From Geosiphon pyriformis uo1 (Eukaryota; Fungi; Glomeromycota), in contig JAAOMT010000473.1 of NCBI GenBank assembly GCA_016748015.1, forward strand, positions 13,182 to 39,164: a stretch of 25,983 bases of DNA, read 5' to 3'. This document shows positions 3,867-25,983 of this stretch, piece by piece. Each line of letters begins with the position of its first letter. Within the stretch, counting starts at the first letter, position 1. Under the pieces are notes generated by a model. The model worked only from the letters and a program-made list of their open reading frames with translations. It had not been told where the DNA came from and made no database searches. A program made the translations under genes and the position numbers.

Positions 3867-4583
3867 ATGAAGACTACCGCTATTCTATTTGCTGCTCTAG
3901 CTTCTGCTTCTGCTGTCGCAGCTCAAGGCGACCAACAACGACTCCTCGCTACTCTAGCCGAGAAATGGAACCTCACTGACCCATCCTTTGCCTATGACTC
4001 AAACACATTCAACCTCACATTCCCTGTAACTGACTTCATCGGCACCGGAATGTCCAACTTTTCCTTGTGGACTGCTCCTGGATGTCAGTCCGATGGCGGA
4101 ACCTCACTCACTAACGATGATGTATGGTCCAGCTCTCCTCGCCTTGTGGAGAATAGTGCTCTCACCAGTGGATCGTCATTGGACAGCGGTGCTTTCAATG
4201 GACGAAGTGCCACCATCGTCGCCGCATTTGATCCACAGAAGGTTTCTACATCAGTCATCTACAATGATACATCTGTAACTGGACAAGGAGCATCTGCCCA
4301 AATCCGTTTCTGCATGCGCTTTGGAGTGTGGACTACAGAAGCAATGGGTGTGACGACTCCGGTCGAAGTCAACTTTTTGGAGACACTTGTGACACTGACA
4401 GTCAACTTGACTAGTGGTTTCCAGATTGGTGCTATCAATGTTGCACCAAAGAACCGTCTTGTTCGAACTGCCAACCAAGCCTACGAAGTTCGTGGATACG
4501 AGTGCAGCGCCGGCAGCTTCAACGAATTGAGTACTGCCGACAAGGATCGTCCTCGCAACCAGGGTGAAATCATCCATGTTTGT
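3867..4583 (+). CDS. Surface glycoprotein family, copy B (3' truncated by gap)
   Basis: Signal peptide MKTTAILFAALASASAVAA, then QRLL. Collinear with the complete copy C, with mostly synonymous differences. Confidence 0.9.
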
Positions 4584-6043: not shown

Positions 6044-6418
6044 GATGATAAGAAATCCTTTGCGACAAAGTAATGAGCTTGCCACGGACAGAGATGGATC
6101 GACCAAAAAAACGATTCCAACTTGCAAACTCGTTGAGTTTCTGGATTGTATTTTATCGTACAGGCGGTACACGTGTACCTGTCTTCCGCGAAATACGAAA
6201 TACCGATATTTTAGTGCAAAGAATGAGCCGTATATCGTACTTATGAGGTATGTACCAGGTATATGTTGGTACATTCGACAGTGTCTACCGGTGGCAAGCA
6301 ACGGCGAATCCTACCAGCGTTGATTGCGAAAAACGGCATTATTGTGTGTAATAGACGCGGCATATTCGGTGAATCATTGTGCTTGCAGCACGATGACTGG
6401 GAATCAGAATAATGTTTT

Positions 6419-6758
6419 GCCGATAAATGACACTGGCAATAATCGACATCAAGGCGAACCACGGAGTGCCTAACAACTAACACCATCACCGTCACATTTC
6501 ATATCGGCACCTTTCCCTTCATGTGCCAAAGGTTTGGCCGATAAATGACACTGGCAATAATCGACATCAAGGCGAACCACGGAGTGCCTAACAACTAACA
6601 CCATCACCGTCACATTTCATATCGGCACCTTTCCCTTCATGTGCCAAAGGTTTGGCCGATAAATGACACTGGCAATAATCGACATCAAGGCGAACCACGG
6701 AGTGCCTAACAACTAACACCATCACCGTCACATTTCATATCGGCACCTTTCCCTTCAT
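6419..6758 (+). repeat. 118-bp perfect tandem repeat, ~2.9 copies
   Basis: GATAAATGACACTGGC starts at 6422, 6540 and 6658. Confidence 0.95.
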
Positions 6759-6835
6759 TCTCACAATTTTCAAACGTCGTGTGCCAACAAGCATAAAACT
6801 CGACTCAACAAAACACAACAAGCCACAAAGTGACA

Positions 6836-7987
6836 ATGAAGATCTCCGCTATCCTCTTTGCCACACTCACTTCTGCTGTCTCTGCTAACAGCGACCAGCG
6901 CCTCCTTGCAACTTTGGCTGAGAAATGGAACTTGACAGACCCAACCTTTTCCTATGACTCGAACAGCTTCAACCTCACATTCCCTGTTACTGACTTCATC
7001 GGCACCGGAATGTCCAATTTTTCGTTGTGGACTGCTCCTGGTTGTCAGTCCGACGGAGGAACCTCCCTCACTACTGATGATGTGTGGTCCAGCGCGCCTC
7101 GCCTTGTAGAGAATACTGATCTTTCCACTGGAAGTTCACTCGATAGTGGTGCTTTCGCTGGGCGCAATGCTACCATCGTCGCTGCATTCGACCCACAGAA
7201 GGTTTCTACATCTGTCATTTACAATGATACATCTGTAACGGGACAAGGAGCTTCTGCCCAAATCCGTTTCTGCATGCGCTTTGGAGTGTGGACTACAGAA
7301 GCAATGGGTGTGACGACTCCGGTCGAAGTCAACTTTTTGGAGACACTTGTGACACTGACAGTCAACTTGACTAGTGGTTTCGAGATTGGTGCCATCAATG
7401 TTGCACCCAAGAACCGTCTTGTTCGAACAGCCAACCAAGCCTACGAAGTTCGTGGATACGAGTGCAGCGCCGGCAGCTTCACCGAATTGAGTACTGCCGA
7501 CAAGGATCGTCCTCGAAACCAGGGTGAAATCATCCATGTTTGTGTGACACCACAAGCAGATGCCCTCACCGATGGTATCTTCATGCGATCCGTCGATAAG
7601 TTTGAATTCAATCGTGACACTACTATCCGTCAATCGGCCATTGAGGATAACGCAGCAGCCGGTAACCTATTGACGACGTACACCCCCGCGGATTGCCAAG
7701 GAGCGAAGGTGTGCCGTTTCTCGACGATTTTGTTTGCACAGTTTTATGCCACTCCAGGCCAAGTTGCTGGTTCAGGTACTGCCTCGATGCAATTTGGAGG
7801 CAATGCCCGTCGTCAGCTTCGTGCAGAGCGCGACTTGCAAGCGGCTGATGCGGCTGGTACAGCCGAGTTTGATTTGAACTTTCAGGTTGCTCAAGCGGAA
7901 GCCCAAAGTGACTCTGGTGCTGGCTCGACGTCCATGGGTGCTGCAGTGACAATGGCTGCAGTTGCAGCAGTTGCCGCTTTGTTGTAA
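6836..7987 (+). CDS. Surface glycoprotein family, copy C (complete, 383 aa, intronless)
   Basis: Signal peptide, QRLL motif, 6 Cys, six N-x-S/T sequons in the N-terminal half, RRQLRAERDLQ basic site. Ends in a small-residue SDSGAGS segment and a hydrophobic tail with no cytosolic extension (GPI-signal-like). Confidence 0.92.
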   Translation: MKISAILFATLTSAVSANSDQRLLATLAEKWNLTDPTFSYDSNSFNLTFPVTDFIGTGMSNFSLWTAPGCQSDGGTSLTTDDVWSSAPRLVENTDLSTGSSLDSGAFAGRNATIVAAFDPQKVSTSVIYNDTSVTGQGASAQIRFCMRFGVWTTEAMGVTTPVEVNFLETLVTLTVNLTSGFEIGAINVAPKNRLVRTANQAYEVRGYECSAGSFTELSTADKDRPRNQGEIIHVCVTPQADALTDGIFMRSVDKFEFNRDTTIRQSAIEDNAAAGNLLTTYTPADCQGAKVCRFSTILFAQFYATPGQVAGSGTASMQFGGNARRQLRAERDLQAADAAGTAEFDLNFQVAQAEAQSDSGAGSTSMGAAVTMAAVAAVAALL

Positions 7988-8152
7988 GGCAGAAGGTTTC
8001 TATTGCTTGGACACGATGCATNNNNNNNNNNNNNNNNNNNNTCCTATGTGCCCACCACTTGATTGGCGATGGAATGACCCAATGATGACCTGGTATGTCG
8101 TACGTTAGTACTAGGTACGAGGTAGAGCTGTACTACCGCTTGGAATCGCCTG

Positions 8153-10370: not shown

Positions 10371-13300
10371 TCCTGTGTCGCAGGCTTCCGCTAAGTATCG
10401 GTGGCTCATCGTTGCCTCGTCCCATAGTATCAATTCGGCCTCGCGGAGCTGTTGAGCTTGTTCACTTTGAGCTGTGATGTGCCATGTGCAATTTTCTTCT
10501 GTTCGAATTGGTAGATGTAGGGCGGACTGAGCGGTTCTCCCGTTTTTTAATTGAGTGGAGGCTATACCTGTTGTGGCTAGCCCAAAAGCAATTTTTTTTC
10601 GAGCTCGTGATCGCGAGAGTAAGATATTTTCACAGAAGGTCTTACCTGCACCTGCCACAGCATCAAGGAAGAAAATTTTGCTCGTTGCTCTTGATCTAAT
10701 TTCCTGTAGTTCTCTTCGAAGGCAGCTGCTTCTTCTTCGTGATTGTAGTGAGTTTCTATAACTCGGAATGGCGATTGTTGTTCTTGGTCAGTTGATGTAC
10801 TACATATTTGACGTGCCTCTTTTGGTACATTGAGAAAGTTGTAGTTTTCTAGGGTGATGTTTCTGTCTTTCAGACGTTGTTCAATGTCTAACGCGAGCAT
10901 GGCAACTTTGATGTCGTTCGAAAATTCTTGATGGTTGTTATATGATCGTTGGTAATCTTCCGTCATTTGGTCTTTGAATTCTTGGAAAAGTGCTGTTGGA
11001 TTTGATGGGTTGCACCATTCTAATATTGTGCAAAACAGCTGTCTTATTGTTTGGGGCAGCTCGATGTGCACTGCTTCTTGCATAGCTTGTCGCCATTCAC
11101 CGTCATCCTCCAAAATACCAAGTCGGAGACAAATGTCTCTGTATGTAGTAGCAGGAGGCTGATTGGTTGGTATTGTTATTCGCTTCAAGTCAGAAAAGCT
11201 TGTTGCTCCAAGTGAATGTTGATCATGTAGAAGAAGTCGCAAGTAGTATAACTCACCCATTAGAGGGTGAACATTGTAAACTCGTCCAATTGTCTTCATT
11301 GCTTGTTGTCTCTTACGTCTTGTCCACGTTTTGGATGATTTATTCCAAACATGATCTTTTGGGAAATCCGGATATAATGCTGGTTGTTCTGAAGTATCTG
11401 CTGTTCGATTGTAGTGAAACCACATTGTCAACTGCGTCTCCGGTGGACCGGCTTCTGCTGCTAGTCTTTCTTCACCTTCTTGGAATGGTATGCGTTGTCC
11501 GCTTTCAAGATGAATTGGTAGTGCTTGCACATTGGGGCACACTTCGTTTGTTTCGAACATGAACGTTCGCCAGCATGCTTCACTTGCTCCAATGCTGCGT
11601 AGATCTTGATACTCTTCAATTTCATTTTGGACCATATCTGCTTCATTGTTGTCATCAATCTTTGCCATTGCTCGGTCGGGTCCTTTAGTAATATATTTGA
11701 ATAGGTACTTAGAGGCGATTGCTGTGTTGCACATTTCAACATTGATGTGCATTCGATATTTCTTGAGGAGGTACGGGTTATATGGTACAACCCATCCATT
11801 GTTGAGAATCCTTGTCAACTGAGGACTTCGCTGATGATAAATATGGGTTTCAAACCAAGGATGACCATCATCTACTGGTCGTCGTCTGTATACAGGGTAG
11901 TTCATTGTCCCCGTCCACATTGTTTCTGGTGAGAGTGGCCTTGGATAGTGTTTTGAACATTCTCCTTTTATCATGCATGGAGCAACTGGATTCAAAGCAC
12001 CACACGGACCATGACACATGAAGCGGGTAACTAATTCTCGCAATCCATGTTCCTCTGGAATTTCAGCACAGACGACACGGTCTATGTCATCGCTTGTGTT
12101 GAATTTATCTTGAGGTGAAAGAAATACTAATATGTGCGCGTGTGGAAGGCCTCGTGCTTGGTACTCAACAGAATACACAAATCCAACCATCTGTCCAAAT
12201 ATGCCATCCTTTATGTCTTGAATCATCATGTCTAACATTCCCTTGAAAACTCTTGATATTATATCCGGTCGGTCAGATGGTGTTTGTCTAGGAAGTAGAG
12301 CTGCTAGAACATCAGCATGATTTGGATCCATGGTCATTGTGATGAATAAATCTGGCTTTCCATGAGCACGGACAATGGCCATTGCATCTTGGTATCTTGC
12401 ATTCATATACCGCAAACTTCCAACATGTGTTCCAGGCAGGATCACTACTTTACCCAAACGCTGTTTCTCATGCACAGCATCCATTCTATTAATGTGATCT
12501 TGAAGCACATTATAGCTTTCAGCACGGAGTGTCTCTTGGTTTTGCATTAAGTAGAATAGGCGCTGTCTTTCTATTCTTGACCATGCACAGCAGCAGTATT
12601 CTTGAAAAAGTCTGGCACTTCTGAAGAGTGTGTCACGTTCATCACTGCGTTGATGTAAGTGGTAGGCATAGAAATCACGTACACTAAGTTTCTTTGGTGG
12701 TTGTCCAGTTGTGTTTGTTGTTGATGATGGCATTCCAGCATACCAACTGTCTTCCCCTTGTGGGAACAGAAGTGTGTAATGCAATGCATCAAATGCTCTA
12801 TGGATATCAGAGACAAACTGTGGTGCTCCATCTTGTCTTCGATTCCGTATCATGATGCTGTGTTGTTTGTTACTTGGACTATCTTCCATGAGTATTTGCA
12901 CTTCTTTTAATCCAGTTGGCTCATTATATACACCTCCGTGGTCATGTCTTCGTTTGGTTGTCGGACTAATACTTAACTGCATCGTTTCAACTTGGTCAGC
13001 AGGTATTTCGCAAACTTGAATGCAGTCTTGGACGTATGGATTGCATCTTTTTAACCAATCCTGCAGTTTGATAAGTAATTGTAATAATCTGTCTTTTGTT
13101 ACCATTGTTGTTCCTGATGGTAGTCTCATGTGTCCTAATCGAATATGTGCCTCGGCGCCTTCATCTTGTTCTGGGTCGTAGACATATATTTGCACAAAAC
13201 GGGGTGTATTCCCTTGGGGTGGCATCAATGAATATGGCATTTTGTGGAATAATTTTCCCTTTACTACTACGTTTGGTCTCCATGACTGGTTACCTGATGT

Positions 13301-13753
13301 GCCATATTTTTCTTCAACAACTTGTGATGCTAAAGCAAGTGCATTATTGAGAGGCCTGGCAAACTTCCTTAATAATTGTCCGTCTATTGTATCATCTTTC
13401 CACATATCATGGATCCTTGCGGCATACGATTCTGATTCATTCTGTGATTCTCTTTGTTGTTCTTTCCATATTTCTAGTTTGATTTTTCCTTTTCTACAAC
13501 ATAGACTTGTTCGTCGTTTTTCTTGGTTCCATAGCATTGCTTTGCAGTATATGCATGGTGTTCTTGCTCCCATTGAACATGCAATGATGGTTTGTTGGCC
13601 AGAAAGAATTGCGTTTGTATTGTTGACGGCTGATCTTGTGACTTGTGATAGCCGTCTTCGCCGAGCTGCTCGTTGGTGCTCCCGTTGATCTTCTGTAAGT
13701 CTTCGCCGTCCTGCTCTGTGTTGTTCAGTGTTCTGCTGTTGAATAACATCTCG
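10371..13753 (-). mobile_element. Helitron Rep/Pif1 helicase gene, partial and frameshifted
   Basis: CxxC..CC zinc motif and Rep motifs PDLFITMT, VEYQARGLPHAHIL (HUH), KYLFKYITKG. Pif1 motifs AGAGKTF, ATTGIAS, ILWDEATM continue in another frame below ~10678. Both ends are at gaps. Confidence 0.95.
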
Positions 13754-13774
13754 NNNNNNNNNNNNNNNNNNNNT

Positions 13775-14701
13775 GGACCACAACGTGCAGCAACGGTCCG
13801 TCATTTGTTGGAAGGGCAGGCGCTCGATGATTTTGAGAACTATATGCGCCCAAACGACGTCGCAGAGACAGTGGACAATGTCAACAAAGCTTTGAAGATG
13901 GTGGCGGTTGCTATTTTTCCAGCGGATGCAGTCACGAGCATGAAGCATTACCTAAATTTTGAGTTGAAGAAACCCAAGGCACTTACGGCACGCGCTTTGA
14001 AGACCAGATTGGAAAGGCTTAACAACTGGTTCGACTATTTTCCTGCTGATGGAGCTGGGCGTACTGGACAAGTAACTAAGCTCACGGAGAACGAACTGCG
14101 AGGAATCTACTACCGAATGTTACCTGCAAGTTGGAGGCGCAAGATGGACGAGAATAACACGTTCTCGCAATACGAGACCCCGCTGAAGGATATGGTGGAC
14201 TACGCAGAACGATTGGAGGTAACCGAAGACAGATACGAGAAAGCGACCAGGAATGGTTCGGCTCATGTTCGCCAAGGCCAAGCTGGCAAAGCGAAGGGCG
14301 GTAGCCCCAATCACGGCACACCTGAATCGGGTGTCGCTAAGGGAGGCGTTGTCTCTAAGTTTTCGAAAAATCGTGACTGTCTAATCCACGGAGTGGATTG
14401 CGGTCACAACAGTCATCAATGCAAGGTGCTGAAAGCACATGCAACCAAGGTAAAGGCGCAATTTGAGGCGCAACCACGCAAATTCGTCCATAAGAAGAGT
14501 CAAAATTACAAACGTCCCGGTGGAGAAAATCAGTTTACTACCGGCACGGAGCGAAAATACACTAAAGCCGAAGTGCAACAGCTCATGAAAAACTTCAGTA
14601 CCAAGCTCAACGTGGAAAATTTCAATATGGAAGTCGAACCCGAGACCATGGGCGAGGAAATGGAAGTCGATCAGGCCCTGGAGGAGCTCCTAAACAAGTG
14701 A
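13775..14701 (+). CDS. LTR-retrotransposon Gag, probably Ty3/Gypsy-like (5' partial)
   Basis: Helical capsid-like region (LKKPKALTARALKTRLERLNNWFDYFP...MLPASW), a basic linker and a CHHC knuckle CLIHGVDCGHNSHQC. Confidence 0.7.
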   Translation, partial: GPQRAATVRHLLEGQALDDFENYMRPNDVAETVDNVNKALKMVAVAIFPADAVTSMKHYLNFELKKPKALTARALKTRLERLNNWFDYFPADGAGRTGQVTKLTENELRGIYYRMLPASWRRKMDENNTFSQYETPLKDMVDYAERLEVTEDRYEKATRNGSAHVRQGQAGKAKGGSPNHGTPESGVAKGGVVSKFSKNRDCLIHGVDCGHNSHQCKVLKAHATKVKAQFEAQPRKFVHKKSQNYKRPGGENQFTTGTERKYTKAEVQQLMKNFSTKLNVENFNMEVEPETMGEEMEVDQALEELLNK

Positions 14702-15342: not shown

Positions 15343-15630
15343 TTCTCATAAATTAATTCCTACTACTGCCCTGTTCCTACTACAGCCCTACAGCCCTGTT
15401 CTTACTACAGCCCTGTTCGTGCAGCAACATCCCGAGGTGGCGGTGGTCGACGGAGAAACAAACGGTTCTCATAAATTAATTCCTACTTCAGCCCTGTTCG
15501 TGTAGCAACATCCAGAGGTGGATACGGTACACACCAACGAACCTACTACAGTGCATGCTGACGTCGTTGTCCAGTTGTGGTGAATTCCCGGGACGCACGG
15601 ACGGATGACAATGCAAAATTATTATAAAGA
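15343..15630 (-). mobile_element. Probable Helitron 5' terminus with nested minisatellites
   Basis: Minus strand begins TCTTTATAATAAT directly after an A of the Copia. Contains a 123-bp-period repeat (15343, 15466) with variable CTACAGCCCTGTTC subunits. Confidence 0.55.
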
Positions 15631-18600
15631 TTGATGTGTTTGGTGCGTGGACGCATGCGTGGGGTTCGTGCAAGTTCCAGTGCGCCAGAGTTGTCCTCAA
15701 ATGCAGTGCACTTGACAACTGGTTGTAGGTCGTCGTTAAGTAATTTGCGGTCGCGAAGTTCCGTAATAATGTTCATAAGAGGTATGACTTGTCGTAGTGC
15801 CTCCGATAAGCAACAATATTCGGCCTCGGTAGTGCTCAGGCAAATCTCTCGCATTAGGCGTGATGCCCACAATATCGGACAACCCGCAAGTCGAATAAGG
15901 TATCCTGCGCGAGATTGCGCTGTCGCAGGGTCGTTCTCGGCAGTATCTTTATTCCAAGTGCCCGCAAAGTCTGCGTCAGCATACACTTCAAATCCTAGAT
16001 TGTAGTCTGGTTTCATGTAGTAACCCTTGTCTCGTGATCCAACTAGGTAGCGGCAGATACGTTTGACAGCATCAGAATGAGGCTCCCTCGGATCGATTGA
16101 AAACCTTGCAGCGTTGTGGACTGCAAAAGCCAAATCTGGTCGAGTGCTTTTCTCGAGGTAGTTCAGTTTTCCAATAATAGAGCGATAGTGCCAATCCGCC
16201 TTGTGTTCGTCTGAATCTGTGTTCTTCGATAATACTTCTCCAATTCGTGCTGGACAAGGTACCGATGAAGTGTTGGTTTGAAAATTCATGTCGTTAAGAA
16301 TTTGTTCGATCAATTTTGACTGAGAAAGATGCAGTGATCCATCTGGTTGTGGTGAGATGTCGACCCCAAGATAATCTTTGAGATCTCCCTCATCAGTGAC
16401 GTCGAAATTGTGTGCTTTAAATTCTTCAAATATTGCGTCGATTCGTGCTCGATCGCTATCGATGATTATGCCATCGTCCACATATACGAGAAACATCGTG
16501 GTTCCTCGGTAGTAGAGGCATTCGTCGATATTTGATTGTTCAAATCCCATGTCGATGAGTCCTTTGTGAAGGTATTGATTCCAAATGCGCCCGGCTTGTT
16601 TCTGTCCGTACACATTTTTCTTTAGTTGTAAACAATAATCCTTGGCATTATAGCCTTCAGGTAGTGAGAACCCTCGGGGAATAGCCATATACATATCGCA
16701 CTCCACGTCGGCTTGCGGAAAGGCCAGAACAAAATCGATCTGTCGCGTGTGCCAATTATACATGAGAGCCAACGTCAAGAAGAGTCGAATTGTAAACCAA
16801 TTTACAACTGGTGAATATGTTTCCCAAAAATTGACTCCATGTTCTTGTTTATGTCCACCGACATTAAGCCGTGCTTTATGCTTGTAGACTTCGCCTGTTG
16901 CGACTCGTCGTTTTCGTTTCATACTCCAGACCGCTGGTAGTACCGTCGTTCCATCAGGTACTTCCGATCTTAGAATCATTATCCAGTGACCTCGTTCTTC
17001 GTGTTGTGACACCTCGTACGCCATCGCTTTAATAAATTCGTCACGATCGGGTGATTTGAGAGCGTCGTCAAGATACATAGTATCTGGGTCGCCGGACTTT
17101 GCCATGCAGGCAATAGGATCATCGGATTCGAAATCCCACAAACCAATCTCTGCTAGTGACTCAAACGCAATCGGGAAAGCCAGATCTCTTGTCTCCAAGT
17201 ACGATCTCATTGCTTCCGTTGGTCGTCGTGTTCTAGTTGTACGTCGTAGAGGTGTCTGTTTGGTTTGCTGTTGTGGTAATTCGTTATGATCTGGTTCGTC
17301 GTTGTCAAATTCGTTGGCAGTGTCGTCAATTTCATTGACTCCCTCGGGAACAGTGATGTTTTCGTCATCAACTATAGTTGTTGGCACCACCGGCTCTGTG
17401 AACAGGTGCTCCCTCGGAAAAGCTGATGTGATAGTCGTGGTGATGTTCTCCACTGGTTTGACATTAATCACAACGCCATCGTGTCGTTCCTTGAAACCTG
17501 CCTTGACTTGCCAAGCAGCTAGGTCAACAGCATTGTTTCGCGGATTTCGTGTAGTTTCGAATAGGTCGTCGAATTGGACATGGTACTGTGGTGATACGAG
17601 CCCAGTAACCGGATTTAGCACCAACGCGACGTTTCGTGCATGATTGGTAGAAAAACCAAGGTAGATACCAAGTCTTGCTCGGGGCATCCATTTCGGAATG
17701 GTCTTACCACTGGCAAGATTGTCCTCCAAGACAAAGATCGGGCATCCAAATGGATGAAAGTCCTTAACGTTTGGTCGTACCGATGAATTCACAAAGATTT
17801 CGTAAGGCGTTCGTCCTCCATGATGTTTGGTGCGACTTGGTGTTTGTGCATGTGCATGGTTGGCATGTCGAAGTGCATATGGCCATAGGCAAGCTGATAT
17901 TGCTTTTGGCCATCGACTCTTGGCATCGAGCAAGATTGTCCTTGCTGCCTCCTGTAAGTCTCGAATTCGTTTCTCGGCAACGCCGTTTTGGAAATGCGCA
18001 TTGACTCCGCAAAACGATATTGACTGTCCTCTGTTTGCTATGTCAGCAAGCCAAAGGTTATCTGCGAATCGTCCGTTGTCGGCATGATAGTGCTTGACTT
18101 TGATAGCATGGGCAGCAGCATATTTTTCGAATGCTCGCTTTGCTTCCAATGTCTCGATAGCGGAATTGGTCTGTTGCAGATGGACGTAGGACAATCGACT
18201 CCAGTGATCGACAAAGACAGTTGCGAATTTATACCTTTTAATTGTTAACGCGCCTTTCATTTGCCCAATGAATCCGGGGCTTGTCGACTCCAGTTGATCC
18301 ACCGATACACAGTCGCCCGGCGCCGTGATGGTTGCCGGCTCGACTTTGGAGGGTTTTTGTTTAGTTCGCCATGCTCTTCGAGTCATTTTCCCATACAGGC
18401 ACCCCGCACATTTTGGTATCTTGCAGGTTGCTAGTCGTTTGGGAATATCCGAATTGTTCGCCATGACTCTCAACTTGTCGAATGACGTGTGTCCAAGTCT
18501 AAGATGCCATCTCATCAACTCCGCCTCATCGTCACTAAGAGCACGCTCGGGGAAGTTGCTGTTTTCGTTGGAATCCACATTGTCATCGTGAAAGTCAATT

Positions 18601-19688
18601 GTTGTAGGCTCTGCTGACGCTGTAGTTTCATCGTTGGTTCGATTAGATGCTAAAATCGTGGCATCGTCATCATCGTTGTCCGAATCAGTAGTTGCTGTAG
18701 TTTCCTCCAATCCCTCGGTAGCTGGGAAGCAAGTAGCTTCTGCAAATGGGTTTGGAATCGTGGTGTTTGTGACTTCAGCAATGAATGATGTTGCTCGGGA
18801 ATAGCTGGGTGCCGACTTCAATATTCCTACGTTGGAATTACTTGAGAGCCTTATCGTGCGCTTGTTATCCCCCCCATTCCACGTTAGGAGTATTGAATCT
18901 CTGAACGTTGTGCAATGTGATGGGCGAGATAGTGTCTGCGACCAATGTTGTGGCGACAGAACTCGAAACGGAAGGTTCGGTAGTAGCAGCACTCCTGGTA
19001 TAGTGAACGCATGAACTTTTCCATCGTCATCGGTGATGTGCCATTTGACAGTTCCTGTTTTGGTTGCTGTTTGTTGGCCAAGTCCTGTGACATGTCGATT
19101 AATAGTTTTAGGTTCATCTATAAAGTCGTCCTCGCAATTTGTCATGCAGTAACTTGCGCAGTTATCGATGGCGATCTGGAAAGAATCGCTGTCAAATGAG
19201 GCAGGTAAAGCATGTGTGCGAGCATTTTCATCTGTTGCATTAGTTGCAGTGTATGTCCGTGCAGCAAAGTTATAATCAGTTGTCGGTGCAACTGGCGATG
19301 GCGACGTGCGACGTCTAACTTTGTTGATGACGACTGCTCCCCCTTTTCGTGGAGAGTAGATGCGGCGACAGTAGTGGGATGTTCGTTTTGTGTTTCGTGG
19401 TCGTTGTCTCGATTTGGTAGTTCGAGAGAGGTTGTAGTGCGCGTTGTCCATGGCAATCGATATTGCTTTTAGCCAAGATTTTGCCCATAGCGAAAGGTAT
19501 CCATTCCGTTTGCGACGTCGACGACACATCCAATGGACAATCTTCATTACAAGCAACACAAAGACAATCGTGGCAGCGACACTCTCAACGATCCACAATA
19601 TTCCGAATAGGTATGCCAGCAGAATCCATATCGGGAATGGTAGATAGAGGAGTGGCCTGCAGAGTCTTAGGAGACTCAGGCCGACTCT
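15631..19688 (-). CDS. Copia Pol frame (hydrophobic linker, protease, integrase, RT, truncated RNase H)
   Basis: IAIDNCAS protease, WHLRLGH..CAGC, VSVD/HADNG/NGVAEKRIR DDE triad, VYVDD, YADADFAG. Frame is open right up to the gag stop. Confidence 0.92.
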
Positions 19689-20828
19689 TCAAAAGTCGTC
19701 ACCAGTGGAAAGTGCAGCGAGGTTCCTGTTGATGTGGAGTTTTGCAATTTCCTTGGTGTTGATCGTTGTCGGAGGTGCACCCGTTGTAGTGCCTTTCGCC
19801 TTGCGGCATTCCTCCTCCTTGTGCTCGCACCATAACTCGTGGTGTTTGCACCAGTAGAACTGCTTTCCCTTGATGGATTTGGCCCTGGTTTCGTTGCCAG
19901 TAGGTGCCTTGTATTTCCAATCAGGGTACTTGCGATTCTTGGTCGCTTTGGTGTCCTTGCCCTTGTAGACGGGCTTGGGCTTTGCATCCTTGTTGTTGGG
20001 GGTCGGTTTCTTGTTCTTTTCCCCAATCAACCTTTGCACCTGTGCGTTGAGTGCGACGATCTGTTTCTGCTGCGAAGACTCCTGGTTCCAAGCATTGTCG
20101 TCAATCAAAGTTCTATACTTATTAACCGCTAGTGACATTAGCCTTTCTGGCGTCAGATTGATGAGCGTCCCATCGTTGTAGTCGTCCTCGCGATCACAAA
20201 TGTACTTGCGAAAAGTCTCGTCAGAAGTACTCTTGTAACCACGGAAAAGGTTGACGAGAAGATCCGAAGTAGTTTGGCCACGTGCTTCAAGTGCCATCAC
20301 GTTGGTTTGAACATCGATGTTGAACTGTTCGATGTCTGAACCAACGTCCTGCATGTGTTGCGACAAGTTCATTAACTTCTGCCGAATCTGTGAAACAGTT
20401 GCTGGTGTGTCGACCTGGGCAGTCGCGATGATCGCTTTGAAGAACAGCAATCCATCGGGTTGGTCCAACACGGTGTACTCGTTGAATCGGGTCGCGACTT
20501 TGATCCTTGCCTCATCAGTGAGCGTTGCGAAGAGACACTCGTAGATCTGATAGGCGTTTTGATAATTTCGCGTTTGCGTGTTGATGTAAGTCAATGCGTG
20601 AGCGCGAATTTGATCATATGTGACGAAGCCGTAATTGTCAGTTAAATCGAAGTTATGACCGTTAACTGGTATCTGCAAAGTAGTTGTCCAATTTGCCGAA
20701 TTGGCTCGTTTGCGAAAGGTATCCACAAAGAGCCGAAGTTTGTCAGGCTTGAGGTCGTACTTGGTCTCCAATGCCTGGGTTGCCATCTCATAGACTCGTT
20801 GTCCATACCTAGAGGTGTAGTCGATCAA
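19689..20828 (-). CDS. Copia Gag (5' partial)
   Basis: Capsid-like helical region, basic linker and WCKHHELWCEHKEEEC (CHHC knuckle). TGA at 19689-19691. Confidence 0.88.
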   Translation of the reverse strand: MIDYTSRYGQRVYEMATQALETKYDLKPDKLRLFVDTFRKRANSANWTTTLQIPVNGHNFDLTDNYGFVTYDQIRAHALTYINTQTRNYQNAYQIYECLFATLTDEARIKVATRFNEYTVLDQPDGLLFFKAIIATAQVDTPATVSQIRQKLMNLSQHMQDVGSDIEQFNIDVQTNVMALEARGQTTSDLLVNLFRGYKSTSDETFRKYICDREDDYNDGTLINLTPERLMSLAVNKYRTLIDDNAWNQESSQQKQIVALNAQVQRLIGEKNKKPTPNNKDAKPKPVYKGKDTKATKNRKYPDWKYKAPTGNETRAKSIKGKQFYWCKHHELWCEHKEEECRKAKGTTTGAPPTTINTKEIAKLHINRNLAALSTGDDF

Positions 20829-20848
20829 NNNNNNNNNNNNNNNNNNNN

Positions 20849-21025
20849 GCCGATGAAGTCAGTTACAGGGAATGTGAGGTTGAATGTGTTTGAGTCATAG
20901 GCAAAGGATGGGTCAGTGAGGTTCCATTTCTCGGCTAGAGTAGCGAGGAGTCGTTGTTGGTCGCCTTGAGCTGCGACAGCGGAAGCAGAAGCTAGAGCAG
21001 CAAATAGAATAGCGGTAGTCTTCAT
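20849..21025 (-). CDS. Surface glycoprotein family, copy D (5' end only)
   Basis: 59 codons, differing from copy B by one synonymous change (TCT/TCC). Confidence 0.9.
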
Positions 21026-22031: not shown

Positions 22032-22689
22032 GTAGGACAATCGACTCCAGTGATCGACAAAGACAGTTGCAAATTTATACCTTTTAATTGTTAGCGCGCC
22101 TTTCATTTGCCCAATGAATCCGGGGCTCGTCGACTCCAGTTGATCCACCGATACACAGTCGCCCGGCGCCGTGATGGTGGCCGGCTCGACTTTGGAAGGT
22201 TTCTGCTTAGTACGCCATGCTCTTCGAGTCATTTTCCCATACAGGCACCCCGCACACTTTGGTATCTTGCAGGTAGCTAGTCGTTTGGGAATATCCGAAT
22301 TGTTTGCCATGACTCTCAACTTGTCGAATGACGTGTGTCCAAGTCTAAGATGCCATCTCATCAACTCCGCCTCATCGTCACTAAGAGCACGCTCGGGGAA
22401 GTTACTGTTTTCGTTGGAATCCACATTGTCATCGTGAAAGTCAATTGTTGTAGGCTCTGCTGACGCTGTAGTTTCATCGTTGGTTCGATTAGATGCTAAA
22501 ATCGTGGCATCGTCATCATCGTTGTCCGAATCAGTAGTTGCTGTAGTTTCCTCCAATCCCTCGGTAGCTGGGAAGCAAGTAGCTTCTGCAAATGGGTTTG
22601 GTATCGTGGTGTTCGTGACTTCAGCAATGAATGATGTTGCTCGGGAGTAGCTGGGTGCCGACTTCAATATTCCTACGTTGGAATTACTT
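22032..22689 (-). mobile_element. Second copy of CoDi-like Copia pol fragment (linker and integrase N-terminus)
   Basis: Matches ~18186-18843 with identical protein translation. Confidence 0.95.
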
Positions 22690-22709
22690 NNNNNNNNNNN
22701 NNNNNNNNN

Positions 22710-25700
22710 CCTTAAAGTCCCTCGGCTTCATCAATCGAAGTTCAATCTCATCTTGTCCTGCGATGTAACCAACAAGTCGACCCATTGCACGCCAGTGTTC
22801 CTCTCCTGGATTGTCCATGTACATAGCCAATTCTCGAATGGTGTTGAGTGCCTCGGGCATCAACTTGCGAACGAACCACATCAGGCGACCAAGTAGCTTC
22901 CGGTAGTTCTCCTTGTCCACTTCATCGCCTTGGTTCTTGGAGAGAGATTCTCCTGGAAATCCTGGAGTCTTAGCATGTTTAGGGTCCTTTCCGGTGATCT
23001 CTTTCCAGTCGTTGAGTATATCATTCTTGTAACCTTCCATGGTCATCCGAAAATATTCTTGCCCACTTTCATTCTTATGATGCTCATACCACACACCAAG
23101 ATGTTTCTTGATAGGTCCAAGGTCAGTGATGTTGAATCGTTCCTTGACTCCTTTCTTGAAAGATTCAACTTCCTCCTTTGTTCCAGCGATGATGCAGTCA
23201 TCGACATAGACGGCAACAAGAAGTATCAAGTTCTGGTTCGCATCATGTTTGAACCAAATACATGGGTCGGCAAGGCTTTGCGTCAAGCCCATACTCTCAA
23301 GGTGTCTCGAATAGGTGATAAAGAACATGCGAGGACTTTGAACGCACCCGTACATGGCCTTCTCCAACTTAAGACAGCTTCCATCCGTTTCGGTCTCTGA
23401 AAAGTATCCGAATTCTTTGGCACCGGGTGGCCATTCGATGTAGATATCTTCGTCCAACTCTGCCTCCAAGAACGCTGCCTCAATATCAATCATTTCGACT
23501 GTCCATCCCTCAAGCATCATGGCGATTGCTAGGGTGACCTTGATTGAGTTGTCTTGGGCCACTGGGGAGTGAGTGTTAGTGTAATCAACACCGGGAATCT
23601 GGGCATACCCTTTTACCACAACTCGTCCCTTGTGTCGGGTTGATCCGTCTTGTTCTTGCTTCTTTTTGAAGACCCATTTCACCTTGATAGGCTTCTGACC
23701 CTCACGTAGCTTTGTCAACTTAGTTGGGGTCCAGACTTTGCGTTTTATAAAGTTCTCAAGTTCACCCTTGATCGCTTTGATCCACTTTACTCTGTCAGTG
23801 CAACTGATTGCTTCTTGGTACGACTTGGGCTCGCCTGGGTCTGAAGACAACTGAACGTTAAAGACTTCTTGCACATCGGCATTAGCATTCTCTTCCGTTG
23901 CTTCGGCATTTGTATTTGCTGCAGCTGCACCGGTCGTTGTAGGGTTGTAATATGTGTTGAGCTTGGCAAGTTCTCTTGAAAGTCTGTTGGGACGAGGGCT
24001 TGCTGCTGGAGGACCTGGAGGAGGATTCTCGGGTGGAGTATCATCATCGTTCCTCCCTGCTCCAGCCGGGGAATCATCCTCATCGTTGTCCGGAACGGCA
24101 ATTGAGGTTGGGCATGGTTTAGGTGGTGCCGGAGGTGGCTCGTCCTCCCCAATGTGGTCATCGGTTATATCAACTTGTTCATCACCAGCAAACATCTTCA
24201 GAGACGTTGGGATTGCTTGGGAACCATGCCAGTCCGCCCATGTGATGTCGCGAGATGCAATTACACGTCCTGTGTCTGGATTGAACATTCGATACACGTC
24301 ACCGGCATGATCGTCGGCATAGCCCATGCACACCATCTTGGTACTCTTGGGTGACAACTTGTTGACATGCCCCCGCTCCTTCACGTAACCGATTCGTCCC
24401 CATTGGACGAGATGATCCAGAATGCGTGGATGCTGGCCATACCAAAGTTGATCGGGACTGTTAGGACTGCTTGCCACGTTTGGTACCGCGTTGTGGAGCT
24501 TGGTTGCCGTCATCACTGCCTCGGCCCACAACTGTGCCTGATGCTCGTCGCTCAATTGGGCACCAAGCATCATTGCTTGTGCACGATCTCGAATGGTAAC
24601 GAACTTCCTTTCGACGACTCCATTGGTCTGTGGAGTGTAAGGAGCAGTAAGTTCCAATTGAATACCATGATCACGACATACTTCACCGATACCTTTCAGG
24701 TTCTCTCCTGCGTTGTCGCAACGGAGATACTTTACTGCAATGGTGGCTCCCTTAAGCTTGAGGACCAGATGTTCGAATGCCTTCCTTGCATCCGTCTTCC
24801 TTGGGACAAAGAAGCTCCAGGCCTTCCTGGTTTTGTCATCAACCACCAGGACCCAGAACTGATTACCTTTGACTGTTTTCTTGTAAGGTCCACTGATGTC
24901 GATGTACAATCGTTCCCCTTTGGTGTCGGCGGGTTTGCTTGGAGTCTTCGACACTCCTTTGGCCTTGGCCTTGGCATAGGCGCAAGCCTCGCAGCTTCGA
25001 CGGTCTCCAATGATCACATAGTTCAAGTCGCGAAGTAGGGTCTTCAATGGTCCGTCGCTGATGTGGCCAAACAGTTCATGAGCATCGTTGATGTCGATTA
25101 TCTTATTGAACTTTGAGGAACCCTTGCCTTTGGTGACCTTGGTCCATCCTGACCCATCCTTGTCAACCTTAGTGCTGGGGTTGCTCGACTTCAAGATCGG
25201 AAACACGTTGTGACGGTCTAGCCCAGGCGTTGCTTTCCTTGCCTCGAGGTAGAAGAGCGGTTGATCACGTTGCTCAATCAAGATCTTGCTTCCCAACGGG
25301 TTTCGAAGTAGCATTTGTCCTCTGCCCATTTCGACCTTGTTGCCTGCCTTGACGAGCTGTCCGATGCTGATGATGTTCTTTGCGATACCAGGGACGACCT
25401 TGACTTGTTCCAAACGGATGAGGACCTTGTCTTTGGTCTCCAGATAGAGAGTGCCTTCGAGTTTTGCTTCCATTGCGCTGTTATCTCCTATCACGACTTG
25501 GTCCTTGCAGCTGCGGGTGTTCACAAGTCCCTCCTTTGTGCCAACAACATGACATGAGGCACCCGAGTCCATGAGGTACTTTCCAAACTGACTTCTTGCC
25601 GCCTCTTCCGACTTGATAGTCTTGGAGTCAGCGATGGTTTGGCACCATAGCATGCCAACAAACATTCCGGTCTCACTCTTGGTCTTGGAGGTACAGTCCC

Positions 25701-25983
25701 TTGCAAAGTGACCCTCCTTGCCGCACTCAAAGCAAACCTTCTTGGTACTACGACACTCGGTGGCCTTGTGCCCTTGCTGGCCACACTTGCGGCACTTCCC
25801 TTTGAACTTTTTCGCCCCAAACCACTTGGTCTTGGCAGGTCCTCTTGCATTGCCTGCGCGGCGGTCTTCCACATTAAAAGCAACATTGGTCTGCTTGATA
25901 GTTGACTTGGTGTTGCTTCCCGGATCTGCAAAGTCTCTCTTCCACTTCTTTGCAATCTCGCGCTCAATGTCCCGGACCGAATA
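22710..25983 (-). mobile_element. Second Ty1/Copia lineage, single gag-pol ORF (partial at both ends)
   Basis: Frame is open from the window end. Two CCHC knuckles, LMDSGASCH protease, HELFGH..CEAC, YIDISG/RCDNAGE/NGVVER integrase and VYVDD RT. Confidence 0.95.

Follow-up and report, generated by a model that had tools for sequence, protein, structure and literature searches.

Can a protein built on the plan of the zona pellucida (ZP) polymerisation module occur outside animals? The question is raised by a gene at 6836 to 7987 (+ strand) in a 25,983-nucleotide stretch, here called the window, which spans positions 13,182 to 39,164 of the forward strand of contig JAAOMT010000473.1 and belongs to a 128-Mb assembly (GCA_016748015.1) labelled Geosiphon pyriformis, a fungus. 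Structures made from ZP modules include egg coats, the tectorial membrane, cuticle layers of insects and nematodes, and the urinary filaments of uromodulin. An earlier reading of this DNA, made from its letters without database searches (the sequence-only reading), had proposed a ZP-module-like, glycosylphosphatidylinositol (GPI)-anchored and protease-released surface protein in a non-animal. Our analysis suggests, at roughly even odds (a probability of about 0.5), that the gene encodes a diatom precursor of an extracellular ZP-like module protein, with the full chain of anchoring, cleavage, strand replacement and filament formation.

The gene is an intact open reading frame (ORF) of 383 amino acids that begins with the ATG at 6836, closes with the TAA at 7985 to 7987 and has no intron and no internal stop. 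Its ATG lies 6 bases inside a longer program-called ORF that opens with GTG, and the position of the start Met is common to the homologues in a 61-member alignment. The features that had been listed for the protein are all present, in the same order. A predicted signal peptide with a hydrophobic N-terminus (residues 1 to 17; 6836 to 6886) is followed by a short putative RxL propeptide (residues 18 to 24; 6887 to 6907) and by domain 1 (residues 25 to 191; 6908 to 7408), an Ig-like (immunoglobulin-like) beta-sandwich in the position of ZP-N that holds C70 and C146. Domain 1 also contains every one of the protein's six N-x-S/T sequons, of which N32 alone is conserved (54/61 members). An interdomain linker (residues 192 to 204; 7409 to 7447), in which T198, A199 and Y203 are invariant, leads to domain 2 (residues 205 to 320; 7448 to 7795), a ZP-C-like sandwich with C210, C236, C287 and C293. 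Beyond it lie an exposed basic loop that is the predicted proteolytic site (residues 321 to 339; 7796 to 7852), a strand (residues 340 to 351; 7853 to 7888) that would complete the sandwich of domain 2, and a GPI-signal-like end with stop codon (7889 to 7987). C70, C146, C210, C236, C293 and R326 are invariant across the 61 homologues, which share 39 to 89% identity, while C287 is present in 66% of aligned rows; the non-canonical Cys pattern noted earlier is thus confirmed as 2 + 4. RNA runs from seawater and fresh water, of poly-A or metatranscriptome type, contain near-identical pieces of the gene. Because the features are conserved across the family (61 homologues; an RxL loop in 201 of 203 domain 2 copies) and matched in RNA runs, this set is not a product of chance.

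The predicted fold agrees with the tandem Ig-like sandwiches that had been anticipated. AlphaFold2, run without templates on a 61-sequence alignment (mean predicted local distance difference test score [pLDDT] 83.6, predicted template modelling score [pTM] 0.50), gives two beta domains, residues 36 to 191 and 205 to 351, each an Ig-like sandwich. The five strings that the sequence-only reading had placed by eye in the order of ZP-C strands sit on predicted strands 205 to 210, 232 to 239, 264 to 270, 293 to 298 and 308 to 320. In a Foldseek search of the PDB with the model, the best match is the polymerisation region of uromodulin (E 1.5e-7), followed by the ZP module of endoglin and, at lower ranks, by uromodulin filaments and two-domain antibody fragments. 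The Foldseek matches were structurally aligned by VIA-align, with residues 200 to 354 as the domain 2 query. ZP2 ZP-C scores highest, at Z 12.8 (3.5 Å, 129/159 residues), followed by endoglin (Z 12.2), betaglycan (Z 10.8; 10.4 to 10.8 over both searches), uromodulin (Z 10.8), ZPD (Z 10.5), ZP3/ZP1 (Z 9.9) and ZP3 (Z 9.0); the first non-ZP chain in this set is a nanobody, at Z 8.7. Sequence identity in these structural alignments is only 7 to 13%.

The same ranking emerged when 48,161 PDB representative chains were searched independently of Foldseek. Of the eight chains that reach a Z of at least 8, seven are ZP proteins, and the eighth, TEP1r, is a two-domain alignment (Z 8.5). The seven ZP entries, at Z 12.8 to 9.0, stand above the single-domain non-ZP matches of this search, all of which are at 7.7 or less, so that the ZP-C-like character claimed for the second domain is borne out at the level of the model. 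Two further searches point the same way. By shape, the ESM Atlas yields, beyond the family's own diatom clusters, only ZP proteins (uromodulin-like, GP2, ZPD and cuticlin-type), in alignments of 190 to 229 residues that span both domains. By language-model features, every named match is a ZP family (best score 0.87, 173 shared features), a lead rather than proof. The ZP "FXF" motif was sought in FEF at 256 to 258, a candidate rejected on position, as it lies inside strand 248 to 260. On the model, a short helix at 301 to 304 in the conserved ILFAxFY motif, directly ahead of the last core strand, would be the better positional counterpart.

The strand that follows the basic site bears on mechanism. 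In ZP proteins the external hydrophobic patch (EHP) forms the last ZP-C strand and part of a propeptide that blocks polymerisation (PMC7737619). Here, residues 341 to 351, which include the post-site strand AEFDLNFQV (343 to 351), are modelled with pLDDT of about 93, and the preceding loop (321 to 339) with 63 to 69. Uncleaved precursors and ZP-C domains that retain their propeptide (ZP2 ZP-C, endoglin, betaglycan and a uromodulin crystal form) align with the model through residue 353 or 354, whereas alignments with the cleaved filament forms (uromodulin, ZP3/ZP1 and ZPD) end at 339 to 340. The strand at 341 to 351 is therefore predicted to occupy the EHP position. This supports, as far as the model goes, the earlier proposal that the post-site strand completes the second sandwich, and sequence and model together present cleavage site, EHP strand and anchor in the order of a C-terminal ZP propeptide.

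The site itself is strongly conserved. Over 203 full-length domain 2 copies, the consensus of the loop (residues 325 to 335 in this protein) is R-R-x-L-R-x-x-R-x-L-Q, with R326 in 193, L328 in 190, R332 in 188 and Q335 in 190 copies. At least one RxL is present in 201 copies and two RxL motifs in 177, here R326-x-L328 and R332-x-L334 followed by Q335. A furin-type R-x-K/R-R motif occurs in 14 of the 203 loops only, and a furin site was rejected as the cleavage signal. Of the basic cleavage site that had been proposed, the conserved basic loop at a ZP-like position stands; its type is RxL, not furin. RxL is a recognised processing motif of diatom cell-wall proteins, whose protease has not yet been identified (PMC5525289, PMC5647440). 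RxL occurs only three times in the protein, where chance alone would give 1.3, and each time at a predicted processing point. The third, R22-L-L24, lies directly after the signal peptide, where RxL is found in 55/61 members, and the N-terminus accordingly reads as a signal peptide with a short propeptide ending in RxL, as in RxL-processed diatom proteins.

Modelled alone, domain 1 is again an Ig-like sandwich (pLDDT 90.7), and it aligns with ZP1 ZP-N1 at Z 6.8 to 7.4 (2.8 to 3.3 Å, 97 to 98 of about 106 to 110 residues, rank 2 to 3), on a par with generic Ig folds. The most conserved stretch of the whole family is formed by the last hairpin of domain 1 (163 to 191) and linker 192 to 204 (mean top-residue frequency 0.82), yet residues 194 to 200 of the linker have pLDDT below 50. 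Such a combination of conservation and poor modelling fits a segment that gains structure in assembly, as the uromodulin linker does (PMC7737619).

At the C-terminus, the protein ends in 17 hydrophobic residues (367 to 383) with no charged residue after them. They are preceded by a polar spacer (352 to 366) in which a small-residue site, S-G-A, is conserved, and the last 15 residues are hydrophobic in 60/61 members. An N-terminal signal, a small-residue omega site, a spacer and a hydrophobic end can all be read in the sequence, and the protein is probably GPI anchored.

The family to which the protein belongs is large, with at least 140 clusters at 90% identity and 743 clusters at 50% identity (E≤0.001), nearly all of them unnamed environmental sequences. 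A search for organism-named orthologues found only environmental "hypothetical protein" entries and none in a reference diatom. In larger relatives, domains 1 and 2 (D1 and D2) always occur as an ordered pair, and in most of the 42 long members this pair is C-terminal, 30 to 45 residues ahead of the hydrophobic end. Mosaic relatives carry CUB, VWD, Kringle or DUF7640 domains N-terminal to D1-D2 (examples are among P0085, P0183, P0210, P0185, P0127, P0166 and P0199). A minority of long members have D1-D2-D2(-D2) arrays, with domain 2 present up to three times, and long charged tails. Combinations with CUB and VWD are also known from ZP proteins of animals, CUZD1/DMBT1 and alpha-tectorin among them.

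These features suggest a route by which the protein could work. A GPI anchor would hold the precursor on the outer face of the membrane, where the diatom secretory protease that acts on RxL of cell-wall proteins could cut the loop. The capping strand would remain with the anchor and leave an open groove on domain 2, which a neighbouring subunit might fill with its conserved linker or hairpin, by analogy with uromodulin and egg-coat proteins. The ectodomains would then assemble into filaments of an organic surface layer, for example a frustule coat, mucilage or an adhesive matrix.

Several observations weigh against this route. Cleavage, GPI anchoring, localisation and polymerisation are each inferred, from sequence, model or analogy, and the packing of the capping strand is deduced from confidence values and alignment ranges. 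RxL cleavage is documented mainly at N-terminal propeptides. The interdomain geometry of the model is uncertain (pTM 0.50). The ZP-N match of domain 1 scores level with those to IgM-Fc, HAP2 domain 3 and antibody V domains, and domain 1 has two conserved Cys where ZP-N has four; of the ZP-N/ZP-C tandem put forward by the sequence-only reading, the ZP-C match of domain 2 holds, but domain 1 is indistinguishable from generic Ig folds. At the sequence level a link to ZP is absent: a Pfam scan of the query protein (E≤10) gave no match, scans of the 61 members gave only scattered chance matches with no recurring family and none to PF00100, PF23344 or CUT/VERL, and searches of the PDB by sequence or family profile gave no relevant solved structure and no ZP chain. 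Finally, counted from strand to strand, the linker has 10 to 13 residues, against 22 to 26 in polymerising ZP modules, and the short-linker ZP proteins endoglin and betaglycan do not polymerise (PMC7737619). The ZP-module interpretation as a whole has accordingly survived in part, in its fold, ZP-C domain, capping strand and non-animal source, and not in a ZP-N-specific first domain, a furin-type site or a sequence-level match. Since ZP membership fails on sequence profile, Cys pattern and furin site, we call this a ZP-module-like family and not a member of PF00100.

The short linker also opens a different reading, in which the protein is ZP-like without polymerising: a GPI-anchored receptor, co-receptor or adhesin resembling endoglin and betaglycan, with an RxL loop that serves for shedding or stays uncut. 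The ZP-C domains of endoglin and betaglycan are among the best structural matches, and the D1-D2-D2(-D2) relatives with long charged tails resemble transmembrane receptors. The length of the linker depends, however, on where it is measured, as the segment comprises 24 to 28 residues when it is taken to start where the ZP-N-aligned core ends (about 177 to 181). A passive tether would also have no need for the conservation that the linker and the preceding hairpin show, the highest within the family, and the double RxL, found in 177 copies (any RxL in 201 of 203), occupies the very gap that separates the last core strand from the capping strand, mirroring the activation design of polymerising ZP proteins. 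We consider a non-polymerising role unlikely. Convergence would be another answer: a tandem Ig-like surface protein with neither an evolutionary nor a mechanistic ZP link, whose C-terminal strand is a permanent part of domain 2 and whose basic loop is simply a surface loop. The lack of sequence similarity to ZP families, the 7 to 13% identity in structural alignments, the generic first domain and the non-canonical Cys pattern all fit such a protein; Ig-like sandwiches are widespread, and middling Z scores can arise by chance. But in the Foldseek-independent search the ZP-C domains of seven proteins outscore all single-domain non-ZP matches by 1.3 to 5 Z units, the complete order of parts is reproduced (Ig domain, linker, ZP-C, basic site, capping strand and anchor), and shape and language-model searches lead independently to ZP families; convergence seems rather improbable. 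A bolder version of the polymerising precursor would make the diatom proteins true homologues of the animal ones, by ancient origin or by transfer, so that the ZP polymerisation module would not be an animal invention. The diatom RxL protease, in place of furin or hepsin, would activate these proteins, and they would build filaments of the organic cell covering through the same replacement of strands. We regard this extension as tentative and on balance doubtful.

Set beside known systems, the polymerising ZP-like precursor that we favour is closest to the polymerising ZP proteins of animals (uromodulin, ZP2, ZP3 and ZPD). Both have the same order of parts, from Ig-like domain and linker through the ZP-C fold (Z 9.0 to 12.8) to basic loop, capping strand and anchor, and in both the module is C-terminal in mosaics that carry CUB or VWD. 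They differ in that sequence similarity is undetectable, that the query has 2 + 4 Cys against 4 + 4 or more in ZP modules and so departs from the canonical Cys pattern, that its domain 1 of about 155 residues is not ZP-N-specific, that a double RxL stands in place of the furin or hepsin site, that the strand-to-strand linker is shorter, and that the host is a diatom and not an animal. Endoglin and betaglycan share the ZP-C fold (Z 12.2 and 10.4 to 10.8) and the short linker; they are transmembrane TGF-beta co-receptors of vertebrates, whereas in the query family the cleavage loop is strictly conserved and the linker is conserved as well. The RxL-processed wall proteins of diatoms (silaffins, cingulins, frustulins, silicanin-1 and SAPs) come from the same taxon and likewise have a signal peptide, an RxL propeptide and further RxL sites. 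Unlike them, the query has no lysine/serine-rich or NQ-rich low-complexity regions (its mature part has 6 Lys and an isoelectric point of 4.6) and is a folded two-domain beta protein which, as known here from sequence and model, carries no indication of association with biosilica. With bacterial chaperone-usher pili the parallel is confined to mechanism: an Ig-like domain in which the final strand is missing or lost is completed by a strand of the next subunit, and such donor-strand exchange has been compared with ZP modules (PMC7737619). The pili belong to an unrelated fold family, whereas the query is eukaryotic and secretory and has no chaperone or usher.

From which organism does the gene come? 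The stretch is part of the Geosiphon assembly, and a paralogue in the window is annotated in GenBank under that name (KAG9295266.1), which would make this a genuine fungal gene. The composition and company of the contig speak otherwise. Its GC content is 47% in the window, compared with 32% in another contig of the assembly, and a search of the assembly found the gene family confined to this one contig. The phylum-labelled ESM Atlas clusters of the family are mostly Bacillariophyta, and for a copia element neighbouring the gene, the sole organism-named relative is from the diatom Fragilaria crotonensis. Near-identical pieces also occur in runs from seawater, freshwater, soil and biofilm, DNA runs of two organisms included. 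A search for the diatom markers PF03842 (silicon transporter) and PF00504 (light-harvesting) found none in the readable part of the assembly, a weak result. Most likely, the contig is a diatom contamination of the Geosiphon pyriformis assembly and the source organism is a diatom; a fungal origin is very improbable. Under either origin, the non-animal source claimed by the sequence-only reading holds.

The gene has company within the window. A truncated paralogue at 3867 to 4583 (+) covers residues 1 to 236 with 89% identity and is the gene annotated as KAG9295266.1, which is probably a truncated diatom gene from the contaminant contig. As labelled, KAG9295266.1 carries extra residues at both ends beyond the truncated paralogue. 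Fragments of further paralogues lie at 2448 to 2705 (+; C-terminal, residues 288 to 373, 79% identical) and at 20849 to 21025 (- strand; N-terminal, residues 1 to 56, 73% identical), the latter with a longer match at 20813 to 21025 that has one TGA inside. The whole gene set is placed among transposons, a Helitron at 10577 to 13948 and copia elements of diatom type at 15546 to 19598 and 22684 to 25872.

Upstream of the gene, a 118-bp tandem repeat (6414 to 6758; 2.9 copies, 99% identical) ends 78 nucleotides before the ATG. It was not found upstream of the truncated paralogue at 3867 to 4583 and might reflect promoter sequence that was recently duplicated. Between the repeat and the gene lies a 13-nucleotide motif, AACTCGACTCAAC, at 6797 to 6809 (+), which recurs upstream of the truncated paralogue (3867) in surrounding sequence that is otherwise unalignable. 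RNA-run contigs start at 6788/6789, just ahead of AACTCGACTCAAC, which may be an initiator or 5' untranslated region element. The window contains 260 N, in a run at 8022 to 8043 right after the gene and in others inside neighbouring ORFs. As N runs interrupt the sequence there, the 3' flank of the gene is incomplete in the window.

The ZP module has been described as conserved "from hydra to humans" (PMC7737619). No report of ZP modules in diatoms came up in a literature search, and the algal papers that it returned mention zona pellucida in passing only. So far, the module has been described in animals alone. For the public record, a fungal genome entry probably contains a diatom contaminant contig. 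If the proposed precursor is real, either the origin of this principle of assembly moves outside animals or a striking convergence is revealed. The diatom RxL protease would gain a structural substrate with a predicted consequence of its cut, and a candidate would be named for the poorly known protein part of the organic casings, mucilage or adhesion of diatoms. Diatoms would then possess hundreds of ZP-like precursors, and the hypothesis can be tested directly in tractable diatom species.

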